A DNA stretch of 60,177 nucleotides, filler included, from Hausera hauseri (Eukaryota): NCBI GenBank assembly GCA_046269625.1. It is 12 parts of 12 records of this genome, joined end to end, with 100 filler letters (N's around TTAATTAATTAA, not from the genome) between each part and the next. Parts side by side here need not be neighbours in the genome. Positions count along the whole stretch, not along the records: positions 54,781 to 60,177 come from JBJURY010262510.1; 11 more parts are not named here. One strand, 5' to 3'. A program made the position numbers and the translations under genes. The notes under the pieces are model-generated. The model made no database searches. It saw nothing but the letters and a program-made list of their open reading frames with translations, and had not been told where the DNA came from. Below, piece after piece: positions 557-60,177 of this stretch (positions are counted from its first letter, which is position 1; each line of letters starts with the position of its first letter).

Positions 557-3500
557 GTGTTCACGTTAAAAGCTTCTACCATCGCACCGACGCCTCAACA
601 TATAAACTTCCTTGTCAACACAGGCGCAGTGATATCGCTCCTACCGCTCACCTTTCCCATTCAAAACGTTACATCTAAAGTAAAATCTCTTTTTACAACT
701 TCCGGACAACCGTTGCATGTTTCCGGAACTTCTACACTTTACTTCACCTTACCAAACTTCTCTGAATTTCGTTGGACATTTACAGTCGCAAATGTCCAGA
801 CGGCCATTTTTGGGTCCGATTTTCTGTCGCACTACAATCTTCTGGTGGATTGTAAACAACGTTGTTTGAAAAGTACCTTCAGTAAAATTCAAACCAAACT
901 GATGAATAGCGTCTCAACCGCAGCACGGATGAGTATCGCACGGAAGTCGGTTTTGAAAGTACCAGCTAATAAACCAGTTATTTCCCATAATTATGATATA
1001 TTTCGTAAATTAATAAAATACGATATCGACAACGAAGCAAGATTAAACATGGACAAGCGTGATTTCGTCACCATAGCATAAACATAGGACAGAATCACTA
1101 CCTCAGATACATTTTCCAATACATTCAGTCTACCTCAAAACTTTCCAGATGTTGAGCCATTGAGTAACTTTCAAATTTCAATTATTAATGACAACGTCAT
1201 TTGACTCCCGCCTGGTCTTTCACAATTGCCGAAAAATCTGCAACAGTACCTTAATACGTCATGTAGTCGCGTACTTAAAAAGGATAGATCTTTCACACCA
1301 AAAATGGCAGTTTACACCACATTATTACACAACACCAAAGACCCATTCGTCAAAAGGTACGACCATTATCATCCAGACAGACAGGCAGTTGAAGCTGAAT
1401 TCGCAGACTTTGAACGCTCCGGGATTGTACGCCGTTCGAAATCGCCTTGGTCTTTTTCTTTACATGTCGTGCAAAAAAGGCCGGATCGTGGCGACAATGT
1501 GGTGATTATCGGCAGCTAACCTCTTTGACTATAATGGACGCTTATCCCTTACCATTGATAAAAGACATATTATATCGTCTCAATTCCACCACTGTCAATT
1601 CCATTATTGACTTGGCCAAGGATTATCACCAAATCCCGGTGGCACCCAAAGATGTCGAAAAAAGAGCCATTACTACACCTGTCGACGTTTACAAATATTT
1701 ATATATGCCTTTTGGCCTACGGAATGCCGCACAAACTTTCCAGCGTCACATGGATGCAATTCTTTCTGATCTCCTTTATGCTCATCCTTACGTTGATGAT
1801 ATTCTAGTTGTTTCTTCATGCATTAAACATCATGAGAAACATCTACGATCCATCTTTCACCGTTTACATCAATGCAACCTGCAGATAAAGTTTACAAAAT
1901 GTGATTTCTTTAAACGATGCATAAATTTCCTCGGACACGTTATCTCTCCTGAAGGGCATTCTCCTCAGCCTGACCGTGTCGAAGCCCTCAAAAACGTACA
2001 ATTATCGCTTACAACCACTGAAATGAGGAACTTCCTGGGTATATTGCACTTCGTCCACAAGTATGTTCCATATTGCTGGAGTTCTTTTCACGCAAACTAT
2101 TACCTCCTGAAACCAGATACTCCACGTTCGACCGAGAACTCCTAGCGATAGTTCTCGCCTTAAAACATTTTTCACATTTGCTTACTGATCAGCGTTTCAC
2201 CATACAAACTGACCATAAACCCCTAATAAACATCATGGCGATGAAACATCCTTCTATTCAACAGGAACGGTAGATTTCGTACTTGTCGACATTTAATTTC
2301 GAAATCAAACATATCAACGGAGTTAACAACTTGGTCGCTGACTTTTTATTTCGGTCAGTAAGCTCAATTAACTTTAGGCCTATTTTCACTCAAAACCAGC
2401 TTCAGGAAAACCAACCATCACAAGACATCCTTAAATCTTTTACTTCCTGCAATATCATTGACTGCGTGGCTCTCGACACGTCCAGACAAGGAGAGCCTAA
2501 AATAATCTTAGCTCGTGCCTTGCAAAAACCGGCATTCAACAGTATACATTCCCTACATCACTCTGGTGATATAGCCACTTTTTGCTTGCTCCACCGACAG
2601 GTAATTTGGCCGTCTATGCGTTCTCATGTGCAAGTGTGGGTTAAGGAATGTGTGGCCTGCAAGAAATTTAAAACCATCAAACATTTGAAGCCACCAATAT
2701 GTCATTTTTATTGCAAATCGCGTTTCAAGTCCGTACACAGATCTTGTTGGTCCGCTTCTTCCTGACAACGATCATCGGTTCATTTTGACCATGATGGACC
2801 GTTCTTCCCGATGGCCAGAAGCTGTCCCTTTGCGGAGCTCTAACACGGATAAAATAGCCGACGTTTTCATACGCACTTGGATCAGCAGGTTTGGATCCCC
2901 TAGGTTCATTATTACGGACCAAGGTACTTAGTTTGAGTCCAAATTGTTTAAATCACTCGTTAACTGATTAGGAATCAGCCATATACACACAACACCATAT
3001 CATCCCCAATCGAATGGCCTTTTAGAGAGATTCCACAGAACACTGAAAACGTCACTGAGAATACTCGCTGAACCCAATAGCAGTTGGACTGCTTTTCTTC
3101 CGTTAGTTCTACTGGGTTGGCGAAACACTCCTTCCACTTCTACAGGTAGTTCACCTACGGAAACCCTATTCGGAGCACCTGTCCGTTCATTATTTGAGCT
3201 AACTGTCTTGGAAGATACACCTACAGACGAAGCTATCCAAACGGACAGGACTACTTTGTCGCAGTCAGTAAAAATTCATTCTGCAGAATACTACATAACA
3301 ATAAAACATACCTACCGAGGATTTATATTCTGCAGTTTGTCTGGGTGAGAAACCAGACGCCGTACGGTTTTCAACCGCGTTATTTGGGGCCCTACAAACT
3401 TGTTCAATTGCACTCTCACAATGCCATTATTTTTAAAGACGGTAAGGAATTAGCGGTGCATATCAACAACGTCAAGCCTGCCTTTTTCGTAGATGAAACC

Positions 3501-3600
3501 CCCCAATATGAATCTTCTACCCCCTTTCTAACTCCTTCACCTATCCCTTTTTTGGTCTCTACGCCCCTGTACCTTTTCCCATTCTGATCCATACTTCTAC
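557..3600 (+). pseudogene. pol: Gypsy pol (PR-RT-RNase H-integrase), fragmented, with an internal deletion near 2075 between RT and RNase H
   Basis: ORF fragments 557-1081, 1447-2145, 2073-2273, 2283-2765 and 3345-3587 carry the standard motifs; the connection region present in the copy at 26700-26900 is missing. Confidence 0.93.
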
Positions 3601-3940
3601 TCCCTTCCCTGAACCTGCTGCAAACTCCCCTTCTACAAACCCAACATCCTTTACTTTCTTTTCTCCTGCATCTCCTTCTCCAAATCCTTATTCGTCCTTG
3701 ACCGACACAGCACCTTACACGACATAATTCGACATTGTTTTACCTCAATCATCTTAGCAATCAGATACAAAGACATCGAAAAATCGCAAATCAGTCACAT
3801 TTAGTACCTACAGTAGGGAATTAAACACTGAAGGGATACAGCGTCTTATACATACGAAGACCACTTAGGTAGTCCACACTGTTCCGTTTTTGCGTTTGCT
3901 TTCTTACTTCATTCTATTTTTATAGTTTACACTTTGCCAC

Positions 3941-54780: not shown

Positions 54781-57700
54781 TCTACAAGAAAGGACAGTGT
54801 TGTTTGCACTCAATGTACCTATGGGGATTGATTTTGATGGAATCATAAGATCGCCTGACACGTTAGCTCCATTCATGATACCAGTCACTCCAGAAAACAG
54901 AACACCAAAAACAACGAGGGAATTAACATCATCTTTTGTTGAAAAATCGATAAAAAAATCAGGGAAAATATTTGACCGAAGGGATGCTACACTGAGACCA
55001 GTGAAATTAGGAAACACTGTGATATAGGTATTATCCTTTATAAATGTCTGAAACTCTTCTGTCTTAATTTTCCCACTTTTCATGTCTATTTTAAGGGCCA
55101 GTAGTAGTGTAAACGTAACTTTATCGGCTTCATATAATCCACGGACCGCATATTTCCAAACTACAAAAGTCATATACTCAATAATATTCATAATTCTTTT
55201 CTGAGTTACGAGAGATTTCTGAGATCTCTGCATAGATAAGTCAAACAGTCCCGAAAACTGACGCAAGGAAGTCTGATACATGCTATTAACAATGCTCATT
55301 TCTACGATAAGAAAGTATAAAATTGATCCTCGAGTTGCCACAGGTCGGTATTCCTCTCGAGCGGAGTTAATTTTAATTTCAGTATCGGATGCTATCTGAA
55401 GTTTTTGACTGACATCAGCAGCAATTACTTTTGTTATTTTCAATGTTTTGATGAGGTCTTCGTCATCGACAAGGGAGCCTTTAACACTGGTCAGCCTGAA
55501 TAGCAAATTTTCTTCTAATTCTTTCATTTTTGTTTTATTCGACTGCACGTCTTCCATTAACTGCAGTCTCTGTGATTCTAACTCTTGTTTTTCAGTTTGA
55601 ATGACAAGTCCTAACAGCTGATCTTCCAGACCTTTTATGGTTACAGTAAAATCAATAATAGATGTTCTTGCAAAAATTTCTGGCGTATAACTCGGGTTCG
55701 GCAGTTTTGTCGTTATGTATAGATAAAATCCTTTCATAACATCGATTTCTTTGTCACCAACTTTAACTTGGAATGATGATCCCTGTTTAATAAAGTTCTT
55801 TTCTAAAACGTTGTCCAATGCTGGATCCAATTCTTCCGATACATCTTCGATTAGAAGAGGTCTTCCCAAAGACAAAGCATCCTCAAGATGTTGTCGGAAA
55901 TATTTATGAATCAATGATGTGATTCGCAGTTCATTTCGACCTTCTCTATTTTTTATCCAAATTTTACCTTGACCCTGTGGGTCAATCAACAGCGGATATC
56001 TACTAGCTTTTGTGACGATAATTCCGTTTTGAACAGACAACTCATCGTTCGGTAAACCTTGAAGATTCCATTCACCAAGCGTAGTTGGATCAGTTAGTAT
56101 GTCGATCAAGTTAAGCGTTGAGGTAAACGGTATTTTTCGAGTCTTAAGTTCCTTTTGCCAACTTGAATTGAGTAGATTTCTAAATTCTTGATTGAACGGA
56201 CCGCAGTAAGACAGAAAAGCTGTTGCCGACAAAACATCCCCAACAAGTCTTTCGATTTGTGTCTTAAATTCACTGCTTTGATTTGTCCATCTTTCTTTCT
56301 CACCAGCAAGTCCTTCGATTAACTCAGTGGCGGCAAACATTTTACGTCTACACGTTTCAGCGTCTTCCAGTAGAGCTTGCTTTTTCCGAAGTGTATCATC
56401 ATAAAGAGCTTGAACCTTCGCCAATTCTCGTTGTTTCTCGTCGAGTATGGCCTGAGCTGCATTTAGGTCTTCCATTAAGAATGCATCTATAATAAAGGCC
56501 AATACAATATTCCTAACCAGTAAAACACAGACCCAATGAATAAGAACAAAAAACAGTCTCGCAACCTTATTTGTTGTGAATACAGCTCCAAGTAGAAGAA
56601 TATGCCAATTGTTTGAAACAGTCAATATGACCATCAGAAGAAAACCGTCCAGTCCAGAATTAAAATTTAAAATACAGTAATGGGCTTTTACAAAATCAGA
56701 ATTAGTTAAATATTTATTACCACAATCAACAGTGTCATTCGAATCAGGATATTGATATACCAAATTCTTTGGAATAGAATATCTATTACCGAAAAATTCA
56801 ATACCAAGGCAAACGAATATATAGTAAATTGAAAGTTGGATGGCAGCGTAAGAAAACAACGAAGGTAATAATACAATAATGCAATGGGCAATTAACCTGA
56901 AAACACGAATTAGGGTTATTACTTTTATTAGTCTTAGAAGTCGAAGAGCAAGTAAAAAACTCAAGTATTGATTTGAGAATGCTATATGAAGCATTTTATA
57001 TATTTCAGTGATAATTAAACTCACAAGCGCAGCCATTATAATTACAAAGTCAAAAATATTCCACGTGTCCTTGAAATAAAGATTGACACCGGCTGCAAAC
57101 ATTCTTATCATAAGTTCACAAACGAAAATAATCGTAAAAGCCCATTCGAAAGTCGCTTCAAAAGTCGTTCCATCAAATGCGATCATTAATATTGCGTTCA
57201 GTAAAACAAGAAATTCAAAAAACAATTTCGTGTATGTAGAACGAATTATCGGAATTAGAAATTGATTTGGTCTCGACATATAACAGCTATAAAATGATGG
57301 CAATGATTTTTCAAAATATTTCCTCGTCATGGGTATTTCTTCAAATCTCAAATAAATATATTCTGTTAACCTGGTAAATTGGTCAGGTGATAAATCACCA
57401 GACTTATCGGTATCCAATAATCGAAAGTACATTTCAAGTTTAGCTTCACTACTCGTTGGCGATACTTTTTTCATAACATTTATAAATGTAACATAATCCA
57501 TCCTATCCTTTTCTGGATTTCGAAGCATTTGAAATGCAGTTTTCAGACGTTGCTTTTTACACTTTACATTTTTTATTACATCGAGACCAAGATGCGTTTT
57601 ATAAGCATTATAAACACTGGCAACTACTATACCCATAAATATCCAATTACAGATTATTGTAACTCCCAAATAAATCAGTATATATAATCGACTATTTTCA

Positions 57701-58662
57701 TATCCTGGAATAATAACATCCGGGGAATTTGATGTTGTTACCAAAACATAAAGGTCAAAAATCGAATCAAAGTAATTGCTAAAATACGGATCAATCAATT
57801 CCACAGTTTCCTCATTGATCATGTATTTTGGAAAGTTTACGAGGTTGTTCAAAAATCCTTGATTTGACATCAGTTTTAATGATTCACTCTCGTCACCCAC
57901 ACAACACTGTAATACATTCGTGGTCTCGTGTGCTTTTGCCATTATTTTCTGCCAACTTTTATCGATATTACTAAATCGTTTTGCTTCTTTCGGTAACTGT
58001 TTTGCAATGTAATTACCTAAGAACCTTTGTAGAGGTAACTTGATGATATCTCTATCGGAAAATAAATTTCTTAAAAAGTTATAAACATCTTCAACTTTTT
58101 CAGGTCCGCCCATATTCATCATCAAAATACCTGTTTTTGGCTCATTGTATGTTGAATAATATTTTATTAAATGTTGTCGAAAAATGCAATTCTTTCCCAA
58201 ATAACTTATGACATTAATTTTCTTTTTTCGCAATACTATATTCAAACTGTATTCAACGCAGACAAAATTCAGCAATTTGTTTGTATATTTATAAATTTTA
58301 ACGACATAGAAAAAACCGCGTGGAGTTCTATAAACAAAAACAGGACTCACCGAGCTATTCCGATAAAGCATTGACATAATGTCGAAAGTTTGAAAAAAAC
58401 TGGCACAATATGCAAAATGTATTGCCGAGACTGGACATCGTGGAGGAGCAAAGTTCTGACACCAATTGTTGATTTCAGCGGCCGAAGAGTTCTTAAAATT
58501 ATTAGCGAAAAGTATCATAATGTCAGGTTTAACCTGCATTTTTGGGTGCATGGAAAACGACTTTGATATTTCCAGAGGCACCAATTGCATAGCATAAAAT
58601 TTCTGTATAATAGCCGGAATACATTGTATTTTAAAAACTAGTTTCAATTTTCGTCTACCCAT
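54781..58662 (-). CDS. Chimeric intronless ORF (~1294 aa, 3'-truncated): unknown N-terminus + ferrochelatase + dynein + dynein + two-pore channel + dynein + SLC12A9
   Basis: Single stop-free frame containing recognisable blocks from four unrelated genes. Confidence 0.88.
54805..55035 (-). pseudogene. SLC12A9: Cation-chloride cotransporter (SLC12A9-like) fragment within the chimera
   Basis: NFTGLS...[35 protein letters not shown]. Confidence 0.8.
55036..56475 (-). pseudogene. DNAH5: Axonemal dynein heavy chain (DNAH5/8-like) fragment, stalk return and AAA5 region, within the chimera
   Basis: [72 protein letters not shown]. Confidence 0.92.
56470..57790 (-). pseudogene. TPCN: Two-pore channel fragment (pore I to S6 of domain II) within the chimera
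   Basis: [19 protein letters not shown]-hand-like [46 protein letters not shown]. Confidence 0.88.
57781..58008 (-). pseudogene. DNAH5: Two short axonemal dynein heavy chain (DNAH5/8-like) fragments: linker region, then stalk region
   Basis: [29 protein letters not shown] then [30 protein letters not shown]. Confidence 0.85.
58000..58140 (-). pseudogene. FECH: Ferrochelatase N-terminal fragment within the chimera
   Basis: [40 protein letters not shown]. Confidence 0.9.
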
Positions 58663-59409
58663 TTGGTCAAAATCGTAAAAAACAAAACTGCTTTCGAGTG
58701 AAGTAACAATCTATTTTAAACTTCAAAAAATTACAATCTTTCTATTTCGCGTTACCGCGATATTAAAACAAAACACATAACTCTATATATATATATGCAC
58801 AGTAAAAAAGGGTGAATCCGGTCCTCGCCTACAGAACTCCACACGATCATAATTTATGTCATACCATACAATTACAGAAACTCTAGTAGAATGTACTACA
58901 CATTTATCAATTTCCCCAACAATAAACAACACAGCAAAGTTATCTGTGAAATTTTATCTTTATTTGGCCAACCATTAAACATTTCTATGGATAAACAATT
59001 ACCAGTGATCATGCAGAATATGTTAAATTTACCTACTTCATGCGACTTCAATTCTATGGCACTAGATCTTATCATGGATTTAATTTTGGATAATTTCTTG
59101 TTCAATGTCCCACAAGTTCGTAGCTTCTTTGAAAACCCCCTCCTCACGGCACAAGGTCAATCCCATTGTAAACAAGGCAACACGAACCATACAGAATACA
59201 AATACTTGGTTTTGAGGCAGGTAGAAATAGGTAGAGATAACGCATTTCAACTATTTGATAATCAGCTGCTCAGCGAACTCCACAATACGACAAATTTCCA
59301 GGCAAACATCGCCATAATAAAAAATTCATTGGGAAATGTAGTCTACTCAGTTGTCGATAGCCAATATGAGTGTGATAAATTCTGTTGAGCACTACAGTAT
59401 GGAACTACA

Positions 59410-60177
59410 GAATCAAAAAATTAAGACATTGGTTAGGCCTATGCGGGTATTATGCCACTTACGTACCAGACAACTCGAAAATTAACGCACCACTATATCG
59501 CCTACTCAAAAAAGGAACTAAGTGGAGATGGACAGGAATGGAACAAAATGTATTCGATGAAATGAAGAAAGTTCTGACAAGCGAACCAGTTTTAAGATAC
59601 CCGGATTTTAACCTACCATTCGTCATTAAAACAGATCCAAGTAAAAAAGGCATAGGATACGAATTAGCTCAAAAACGAGAAGTCTAAGAATTAGAACATC
59701 CAATAGCTTATGGTGGACGCTAATTAAATAAAGCATAAAAGAATTATTCGGTTACCGAATTAGAAACGTTAGCCGTAAAAGAAGCACTACGACATTTTAA
59801 TGTCTACATTTACCGACAAACGATTATCATTGTGACTGACTACAAAGCAGTTACGACATTAAAAGGACGAGCTAACAACCCAACATGTAGATTAAACCGT
59901 TGGATTGAGGAAATTTCAAGATATAATATTGAATTCCAATACAAACTCGGTAACAAACACGTGGATGCCGACGCATTATCAAGATTAAAGACAAAAACGA
60001 GTTCAATCATCACACTAAAGAAACCACAACTTGAACAGTTGATCGAACGGCGAAGAACTTTAATATGGGATAAGACAATTAGAATTACAGCGGAGCAAGC
60101 TAAAGATATGGTTATTCAACAGATTATCGAGTTCGTACAAAACGACAAAATACCAAAAGGACGGCAACTGAAAAAGC
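59410..60177 (+). pseudogene. pol: Gypsy RT C-terminus and RNase H fragment
   Basis: LRHWLGLCGYY..PLYRLLKK..PVLRYPDFNLPFVIKTD..NYSVTELE.LA..TDYKA..NKHVDADALSR. Confidence 0.92.

Follow-up and report, generated by a model that had tools for sequence, protein, structure and literature searches.

Reverse transcriptases are known to join unrelated transcripts by switching from one RNA template to another, and the locus described here is probably a further example of this process. In retroposition mediated by long terminal repeat (LTR) retrotransposons, the switches occur at stretches of microsimilarity with a median length of 6 bp, and one product can contain more than two switches, combine several parental genes and undergo further retroposition as a chimera, as described by Tan et al. 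(2016, Genome Res, PMC5131818), who also cite work on Ty1 of yeast. Here we analyse a stretch of 60,177 nucleotides from Hausera hauseri (NCBI GenBank assembly GCA_046269625.1), referred to as the window, whose last piece (positions 54,781 to 60,177, record JBJURY010262510.1) carries a long open reading frame (ORF) composed of fragments of ferrochelatase (FECH), dynein, a two-pore calcium channel and an SLC12 cotransporter. We consider it probable that this ORF is a real genomic mosaic pseudogene, derived from RNA by microhomology-guided template switching of the known LTR-mediated type.

Like the chimeras of Tan et al. (PMC5131818), the mosaic contains partial, intron-free mRNA copies from several donors, joined at what seem to be a few shared bases, has retrotransposon sequence alongside and may occur in secondary copies of the whole chimera. 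It differs from them in that its path visits one donor three times in colinear order and includes six or more joints, one with an overlap of only 3 nt, that the sole retrotransposon fragment lies on the opposite strand with no LTRs seen, and that the host is flatworm-like, a group outside the coverage of that paper. Maize Bs1, as summarised there (Elrouby and Bureau 2001, 2010, via PMC5131818), is an LTR element with a hybrid ORF containing three transduced host gene fragments. By this account, the two loci share the in-frame fusion of unrelated host fragments into a long ORF in or next to a retroelement and the presence of more than one copy, but Bs1 is expressed and argued to be functional, whereas the mosaic diverges neutrally and its domains are cut in mid-fold. 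Bipartite and tripartite chimeric retrogenes driven by long interspersed nuclear elements (LINEs), such as the U6-L1 type and a tripartite pseudogene of Magnaporthe (PMC2104539), likewise arise by direct same-sense fusion of DNA copies of different cellular RNAs through template jumps; they terminate in poly(A) or in the 3' part of a LINE, carry target-site duplications and mostly join whole small RNAs, whereas the mosaic pieces are internal mRNA segments and neither end of the mosaic is visible. Retroviral copy-choice, patch insertion and host-sequence transduction, finally, resemble the mosaic in donor-acceptor-donor switching at short homologies and in the placement of a foreign patch within a colinear template. 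In contrast to the co-packaged RNAs of these viruses, no viral genome is visible here, and the resident template appears to be a host-derived retro-sequence.

Results and discussion

A mosaic frame from at least four genes

The ORF runs on the minus strand from an ATG at 58662 to the edge of the piece at 54781, spanning 1,294 codons without a stop, and comprises, in frame and in this order, a repeat-derived start, the ferrochelatase piece, dynein blocks a and b, the two-pore channel block, dynein block c and, at the C-terminal end, an SLC12 fragment of ~65 residues (Table 1). On the 1,294-residue translation, Pfam recognises Ferrochelatase at residues 176-230 (PF00762 profile positions 1-58), DHC_N2 at 214-262, EF-hand and Ion_trans at 371-728, the dynein MT stalk at 731-836 and AAA_9 at 864-1084. 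The start codon is located in a high-copy 0.53-kb block and not in a gene. The dynein donor is DNAH5-like (PDB 8j07 chain n0, E 4e-245), and piece-wise PDB alignment places the three blocks colinearly along it.

This colinearity had been noted in the original prediction, which had explained the locus by microhomology-guided copy-choice away from and back onto the same template. All four junctions it had named were recovered in place by Pfam, by PDB alignments and by the ends of contigs from public sequencing runs, but the first dynein stretch turned out to be two pieces, whose joint at GDE-S-ESL (57886-57888) had been missed and skips ~1,670 DNAH5 residues.

The best named relatives of the channel block are cestode two-pore channels with 43% identity, compared to 30-34% for molluscs and fish, which points to a flatworm-like source. 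The block starts at the domain-I pore loop (PYF.NY) and reaches the end of IIS6 (AFLxE); it thus represents an incomplete channel that begins in the middle of a pore domain, just as the dynein part of the mosaic lacks AAA1-4. Searches of protein libraries that contain no sequence from this organism, by word index and by a full scan of cluster representatives, yielded nothing but the ordinary two-pore channels, dyneins and ferrochelatases of other species, the best of which were 60-83% identical; four hits that seemed to span the dynein a/b joint (P0090, P0191, P0201, P0223) proved to be plain dynein fragments. Exact-pattern scans of JGI metagenome contigs, likewise devoid of sequence from the organism, for the a/b joint and for the dynein side of the channel/dynein joint gave zero matches.

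Table 1. Features of the piece at 54,781 to 60,177, in window positions
Feature	Positions	Strand	Evidence and remarks
SLC12 (Na-K-Cl / K-Cl cotransporter) fragment	54781..55037	-	NKCC1 469-525 (PDB), Pfam AA_permease; continues past piece edge
Junction dynein c / SLC12, codons AAG GAT	55035..55038	-	Run-contig ends
Dynein c, DNAH5 3441-3923, end of stalk and AAA5 region	55038..56476	-	PDB 8j07; Pfam MT and AAA_9
Junction channel / dynein c, 3-nt overlap, AAT on coding strand	56474..56476	-	Run-contig ends
Two-pore calcium channel block, 1304 nt	56477..57780	-	Pfam Ion_trans and EF-hand; two-pore channel alignment
Junction dynein b / channel, codons for PYF	57781..57789	-	X1 contig ends; PYF conserved in both families
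Dynein b, DNAH5 3352-3387, stalk	57781..57885	-	PDB alignment
Junction dynein a / b, inside dynein	57886..57888	-	Two DNAH5 stretches meet; X1 contig spans
Dynein a, DNAH5 1639-1684, linker	57889..58010	-	Pfam DHC_N2; PDB alignment
Junction ferrochelatase / dynein a at IAK	58000..58010	-	Contig ends; IAK conserved in both families
Ferrochelatase N-terminal piece, presequence region to LG.xIAK, spliced form	58011..58316	-	Pfam PF00762; alignment
High-copy 0.53-kb block, imperfect inverted ends	58317..58845	.	Inverted repeat 58317-58351 / 58811-58845
190-codon open frame	58816..59385	+	35% G+C DNA; X1 depth 158-200
Decayed Ty3/gypsy-type reverse transcriptase thumb / RNase H remnant	59395..60177	+	Pfam RT_RNaseH_2 and RT_RNaseH; in-frame stops, frame change

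The donors share 11 bases or fewer at the joints

At the nucleotide level, the joints were delimited with contigs from four public runs (X1 to X4) of four studies, labelled as four organisms; the statements below refer to the listed contigs, beside which there are a further 291 loose ends and 3,827 contig pieces. The tightest limits were obtained for the channel/dynein c joint, where two-pore channels read AFLIE, DNAH5 reads AMQDL and the window reads AFLMEDL. Dynein-type contigs of X1 and X2 match the window up to 56476, while the X1 channel contig begins at 56474, leaving an overlap of 3 nt, which is the only one bounded on both sides by nucleotide sequence and which on its own would arise by chance in 5-8% of cases.

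For the three other joints between different genes, upper limits were derived. FECH relatives read LG.xIAKRR and dyneins GGDIAKQLP, and the window has [10 protein letters not shown], with the IAK at 58000-58008 fitting both families; an X1 contig ends at 58010, two bases before IAK, and the overlap is at most 11 nt. Dyneins have L.PYF, the nearest two-pore channel relative has PYFRNY and the window IDPYFSNY, so that the PYF at 57781-57789 is again common to both families; X1 dynein-type contigs match as far as 57781, where the F codon of PYF is completed, and the overlap is at most 9 nt. At the dynein c/SLC12 joint, SLC12-type contigs of all four runs match from 55037 and then diverge in sequence, the X1 loose end reading ..CCAGAG/GATAAT where the window reads ..ATAAAG/GAT.., and the overlap is at most about 3-4 nt. 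In these three cases, the limits on the FECH side, on the channel side (PYF) and on the dynein side (FIK, followed by G in DNAH5) are set by the protein families alone.

Since these overlaps, 3 nt at the channel/dynein joint and at no joint more than 11 nt, are far below any assembly k, misjoining of k-mers by an assembler is excluded, in agreement with what had been anticipated from the sequence. The direct repeats 55032-55047 and 57474-57489 touch a joint but are no more than AT-rich DNA would produce by chance.

The pieces were probably copied from spliced RNA

A copying of the pieces from spliced RNA is supported by an intron that is present in another copy of the FECH stretch but absent from the window. 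An X1 contig with a depth of 7.7 carries an insert of 40 nt with GT..AG ends at 58023-58027, reading AAAG/GTATTC...TTAAG/GTTC on the coding strand. Mini-introns of 40 nt with GT..AG ends have a size found in flatworm genomes. The FECH/dynein joint is located 15-25 nt downstream of this intron site, away from the exon edge. In the SLC12 piece, 54857 is followed in one X1 contig directly by SLC12-type sequence from 55020 on, so that 162 nt (54 codons) are missing; both edges read CAG, and an exon edge would accordingly lie 20 nt inside the piece rather than at its joint with dynein. This contig could represent either an exon-skipped SLC12 form or a deleted copy. For dynein and the channel, the spliced origin rests solely on uninterrupted coding stretches of 1.3-1.4 kb. 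The absence of the FECH intron and the probable SLC12 exon-exon joint are what would be expected of chimeric retrocopies of the LTR-mediated type, which are copies of spliced mRNA without introns. Such retrocopies are flanked on both sides by same-sense parts of one LTR retrotransposon, with both LTRs; at the mosaic, a Ty3/gypsy remnant lies on one side but on the opposite strand, the other side lies beyond the piece, and no LTR was recognised.

These positions also bear on a chimera made by splicing, in which several pre-mRNAs would have been joined by trans-splicing or read-through splicing and the product reverse-transcribed later. Trans-splicing occurs in flatworms, all pieces share one sense and one frame, and the end of the X1 channel contig falls precisely on 56474, a possible exon edge. 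The FECH/dynein a and SLC12 joints, in contrast, are offset from the respective intron site and exon edge by the distances given above, the joints ..TTAAT/GGAA.. and ..AAAG/GAT.. exhibit shared bases rather than donor and acceptor logic, and the passage from dynein 1684 to 3352 would require ~5 kb of exons to be skipped. We therefore regard a splicing origin as very unlikely. Template switching during DNA replication, as in fork stalling and template switching or microhomology-mediated break-induced replication (FoSTeS/MMBIR), or the capture of genomic fragments by a transposon, seems barely conceivable: such processes likewise leave microhomology at the joints, insert patches copied from a template and can resume on the first template, but they copy genomic DNA together with its introns, whereas the coding sequence here is uninterrupted over 1.3-1.4 kb and the FECH intron is missing.

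The channel block is a patch, and two joints recur elsewhere

A form in which dynein b and c are natively joined exists among the run contigs. In X1 (record 3, depth 143), a contig matches 56181-56476 without difference, continues with ~161 other letters and then matches 57781-57810. These 161 letters correspond to 54 codons minus one base, which fits the absent stalk in size and in phase, and the stalk segment missing from the window, DNAH5 3388-3440, measures 53 residues, close to the ~55 residues of stalk that the channel had been said to replace. As this contig has an uninterrupted stalk, the 1,304-nt channel block is a patch in place of 161 nt of stalk, after which the mosaic returns to the same template 54 codons further on. 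Structural variants with and without the channel block thus both occur among the run contigs. Two joints of the mosaic recur as well: the a/b joint in a 230-nt contig of X1 (record 6, 57781-58010) with five differences, all in piece b, and the FECH/a joint in a contig of X2 (record 12, 57940-58127) with two differences, that is, in non-identical contigs of two other studies. Run contigs over dynein piece c differ from the window by 0-1.6%, and the SLC12-type contigs of all four runs, which match 54862/54871-55037, share the same 5-6 differences from it. Two X1 channel contigs (56474-56805, depth 38; 56810-57746, depth 15) are identical to the window.

A gap of 4 nt (56806-56809) separates these two channel contigs, whose depths differ by a factor of 2.5, and the bin shows additional depth; the gap is probably a cluster of polymorphic sites between channel-bearing copies.

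The recurrences are relevant to the question of whether the mosaic is an artefact, due either to misassembly or to chimeric library molecules, such as those formed by template switching in vitro, by amplification or through contamination with complementary DNA (cDNA). The record is a 5.4-kb contig of repeat-rich sequence, the channel/dynein c and dynein c/SLC12 joints were seen in the window only, run contigs end exactly at the joints, and a second copy turned up neither in the protein nor in the metagenome searches. Conversely, overlaps of 3 nt and of at most 11 nt cannot give a de Bruijn misjoin, and FECH/a and a/b are found again in independent studies. Moreover, re-use of the same reads does not account for the window pieces, which are 0-4% off the run contigs and have changes of their own at conserved residues, and an in-frame re-entry into the same template 54 codons on is unlike a random library chimera. 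We consider an artefact quite unlikely.

The patch could alternatively have been acquired by capture of cDNA at a chromosome break: an older dynein retrocopy would have been broken in the stalk, lost 161 nt and been end-joined with a channel cDNA at microhomologies of 3-9 nt, and the other joints could share the same origin. An insertion with a small deletion and short overlaps is what such repair produces, the colinear return would need no special explanation, and the channel-free form with the 161 letters is the abundant one in X1, the channel block being present at lower depth. The same sense and the in-frame fit at both ends of the patch are, on the other hand, unexpected for end joining of a loose fragment, and the at least six joints of this kind at one locus would need repeated breaks. 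On balance, break repair appears unlikely as the origin of the mosaic.

The frame is decaying, not conserved

When codons were placed on dynein alignments, the window proved to be derived at the invariant N918 (I) and at T1080 (I), Q913 (R) and D280 (Y), while the abundant X1 dynein contig has Y at the invariant N879 and lacks one codon in KASRYP. Between the window and the run contigs, 12 non-synonymous and 3 synonymous differences were counted over 1,248 sites, a ratio of non-synonymous to synonymous divergence (pN/pS) of 1.11, and an omega of 0.2 or less was rejected with p = 0.003. The test thus gave no indication of purifying selection on the mosaic frame, and both lineages, that of the window and that of the X1 form, are drifting as pseudogenes. 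The abundant X1 dynein-type contigs were considered as a working parental gene and ruled out by N879Y, by the lost KASRYP codon and by the a/b joint.

A working hybrid gene under selection, for which one could invoke the length of at least 1,294 codons, the start codon, the frame kept across six joints and the precedent of the maize Bs1 hybrid ORF (as cited in PMC5131818), is hardly credible in view of the pN/pS of 1.11, the changes at invariant dynein residues in both lineages, the loss of the KASRYP codon, the channel block that begins in mid-domain and the absence of AAA1-4 from dynein. We ascribe the intactness of the hybrid ORF to the youth of the copy rather than to conservation, and for annotation the locus serves as a warning that a long, domain-rich ORF is here not a gene.

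Probable template switching, with at least two rounds proposed

In the reading we favour, a reverse transcriptase copying one RNA would repeatedly slip at a few shared bases onto another RNA and then back. Following the sense strand from 3' to 5', the cDNA would have started on SLC12 mRNA, passed to dynein from ~3923 down to 3441 and then to two-pore channel mRNA from the end of IIS6 back to the domain-I pore, before returning to dynein from 3387 to 3352, jumping within dynein to 1684 down to 1639 and moving to ferrochelatase at codon ~60 towards the 5' end. As the dynein coordinates fall monotonically along this path, a dynein-derived RNA would be the resident template and the other genes would be patches.

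Depths inform on the number of copies. In X1, a run of 15.5 million contigs totalling 1.2 Gb, the depth is ~129 for the FECH piece, 113 for a/b and 121-143 for dynein c, close to the 158-200 of a 190-codon open frame on the plus strand; in X2, all four have a depth of ~4-6. That fragments of unrelated genes agree in depth, and do so in two runs, argues for one physical molecule. The channel block, by comparison, has a depth of 15-38 in X1, the intron-bearing FECH contig one of 7.7, the window-type SLC12 letters 3.4 and the SLC12-type contigs 378; the 0.53-kb block reaches 670-3065 and the retrotransposon remnant 1e4-3.5e4. If X1 is low-coverage DNA, as we infer, the core mosaic family would have perhaps tens of copies, of which the channel patch would mark a subset.

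The forms with and without the patch suggest at least two rounds, in the first of which the core of FECH, a, b, stalk and c would have been formed and multiplied to several copies, while the channel block would have been added later in a subset that includes the window copy. Both the depths and the decay seen in the abundant run contigs suggest that the 'same template' was an already chimeric, multi-copy retro-sequence rather than dynein mRNA itself. The return to the same template that the original prediction had proposed is borne out by the existence of the stalk-intact form, but the template itself seems to have been chimeric, and break repair would fit this step equally well. The pattern of forms with and without the patch would fit a non-autonomous retro-element in further cycles of reverse transcription.

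Several points weigh against this interpretation. None of the listed run contigs bridges the channel/dynein c joint, and the X1 depth in bin 56401-56580 is the exact sum of the flanking contigs; the dynein c/SLC12 joint is not bridged among the listed contigs either, and a contig across dynein b/channel is indicated only by an excess of ~1,050 depth-letters in X1 bin 57661-57840. The copy-choice account is supported in part, by the short overlaps, the absent intron, the two recurring joints and the stalk-intact form. The divergence of the blocks from the run contigs is uneven (chi-square p = 4e-10), with no difference in 1,269 nt of the channel and none in a, compared to 4.3% in b and 3.4% in SLC12. 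The copy number deduced from depths would hold only if the runs are DNA rather than RNA. The only retrotransposon sequence in view lies on the strand opposite to the mosaic ORF, 0.7 kb away, and no LTR, poly(A) or target-site duplication is visible in the piece, the 3' end of the mosaic being located beyond its edge at 54781. Break repair and a second round of reverse transcription predict the same picture for the patch.

A further difficulty is frame continuity. All six joints are in frame; each block has 1-43 stops in each of the two other frames and none in that of the ORF. Since 36% (k = 3) to 46% (k = 8) of the k-mers shared between donors are in the same frame, six in-frame joints would have a chance of ~0.004 under plain template switching even after this bias is accounted for. 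With a pN/pS of 1.1, protein selection is not the reason. Candidate explanations are ascertainment by the scan, or some benefit that a long open frame confers as such RNAs arise or multiply. One can accordingly imagine a self-propagating mosaic retro-element of flatworms that adds or swaps host mRNA patches in each round of reverse transcription and whose copies with a long open frame persist, for example because translated RNA would be more stable or better packaged. We regard such an element as distinctly improbable; if true, it would explain the six in-frame joints without protein selection.

If derived by template switching, as we consider probable, the locus offers an unusually rich example that is both clean and young. 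It has six joints or more, draws on at least four donor genes, one of which the path enters three times in order, and would show reverse transcriptases shuffling coding sequence in an animal group for which this has no prior description. Should the forms with and without the patch be successive states, it would record template switching step by step, and its all-in-frame outcome raises the testable question of whether frame continuity is favoured at the formation or during the spread of chimeras.

Surroundings of the mosaic

The 0.53-kb block at the 5' end of the ORF contains its ATG (58660-58662) and first ~115 codons. Its X1 depth is 5-25 times that of its flanks (113-158), its run contigs are 0.4-10% different, and relatives are found in the three other runs. 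No family in Pfam, NCBIfam or the ESM Atlas matched the block or the 115 codons, and a target-site duplication is not obvious. It looks like a short high-copy element with inverted termini that supplied the start codon of the mosaic. The 190-codon frame adjoining it on the plus strand had no match in Pfam, NCBIfam or the ESM Atlas; because it is as deep as the dynein pieces in X1 and X2 alike, it may be part of the same repeated unit despite its opposite strand. Scans of the piece for Rfam families, tRNAs and tandem repeats were blank or trivial.

In both X1 and X2, the SLC12-type contigs are roughly three times as deep as the dynein pieces, which raises the possibility that the SLC12-like stretch is itself a repeated fragment and not the single working gene. 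For some contigs of X3, X4 and X2, the match to the window is confined to 35-40 nt of conserved coding sequence (55787-55827 in dynein, 57044-57078 in the channel), with G+C-rich sequence on both sides. These contigs come from other organisms in the runs, whose labels thus tell little about the source of the window. The family of the reverse transcriptase remnant is hugely abundant in the runs, and the window copy differs from the majority letters at many places.

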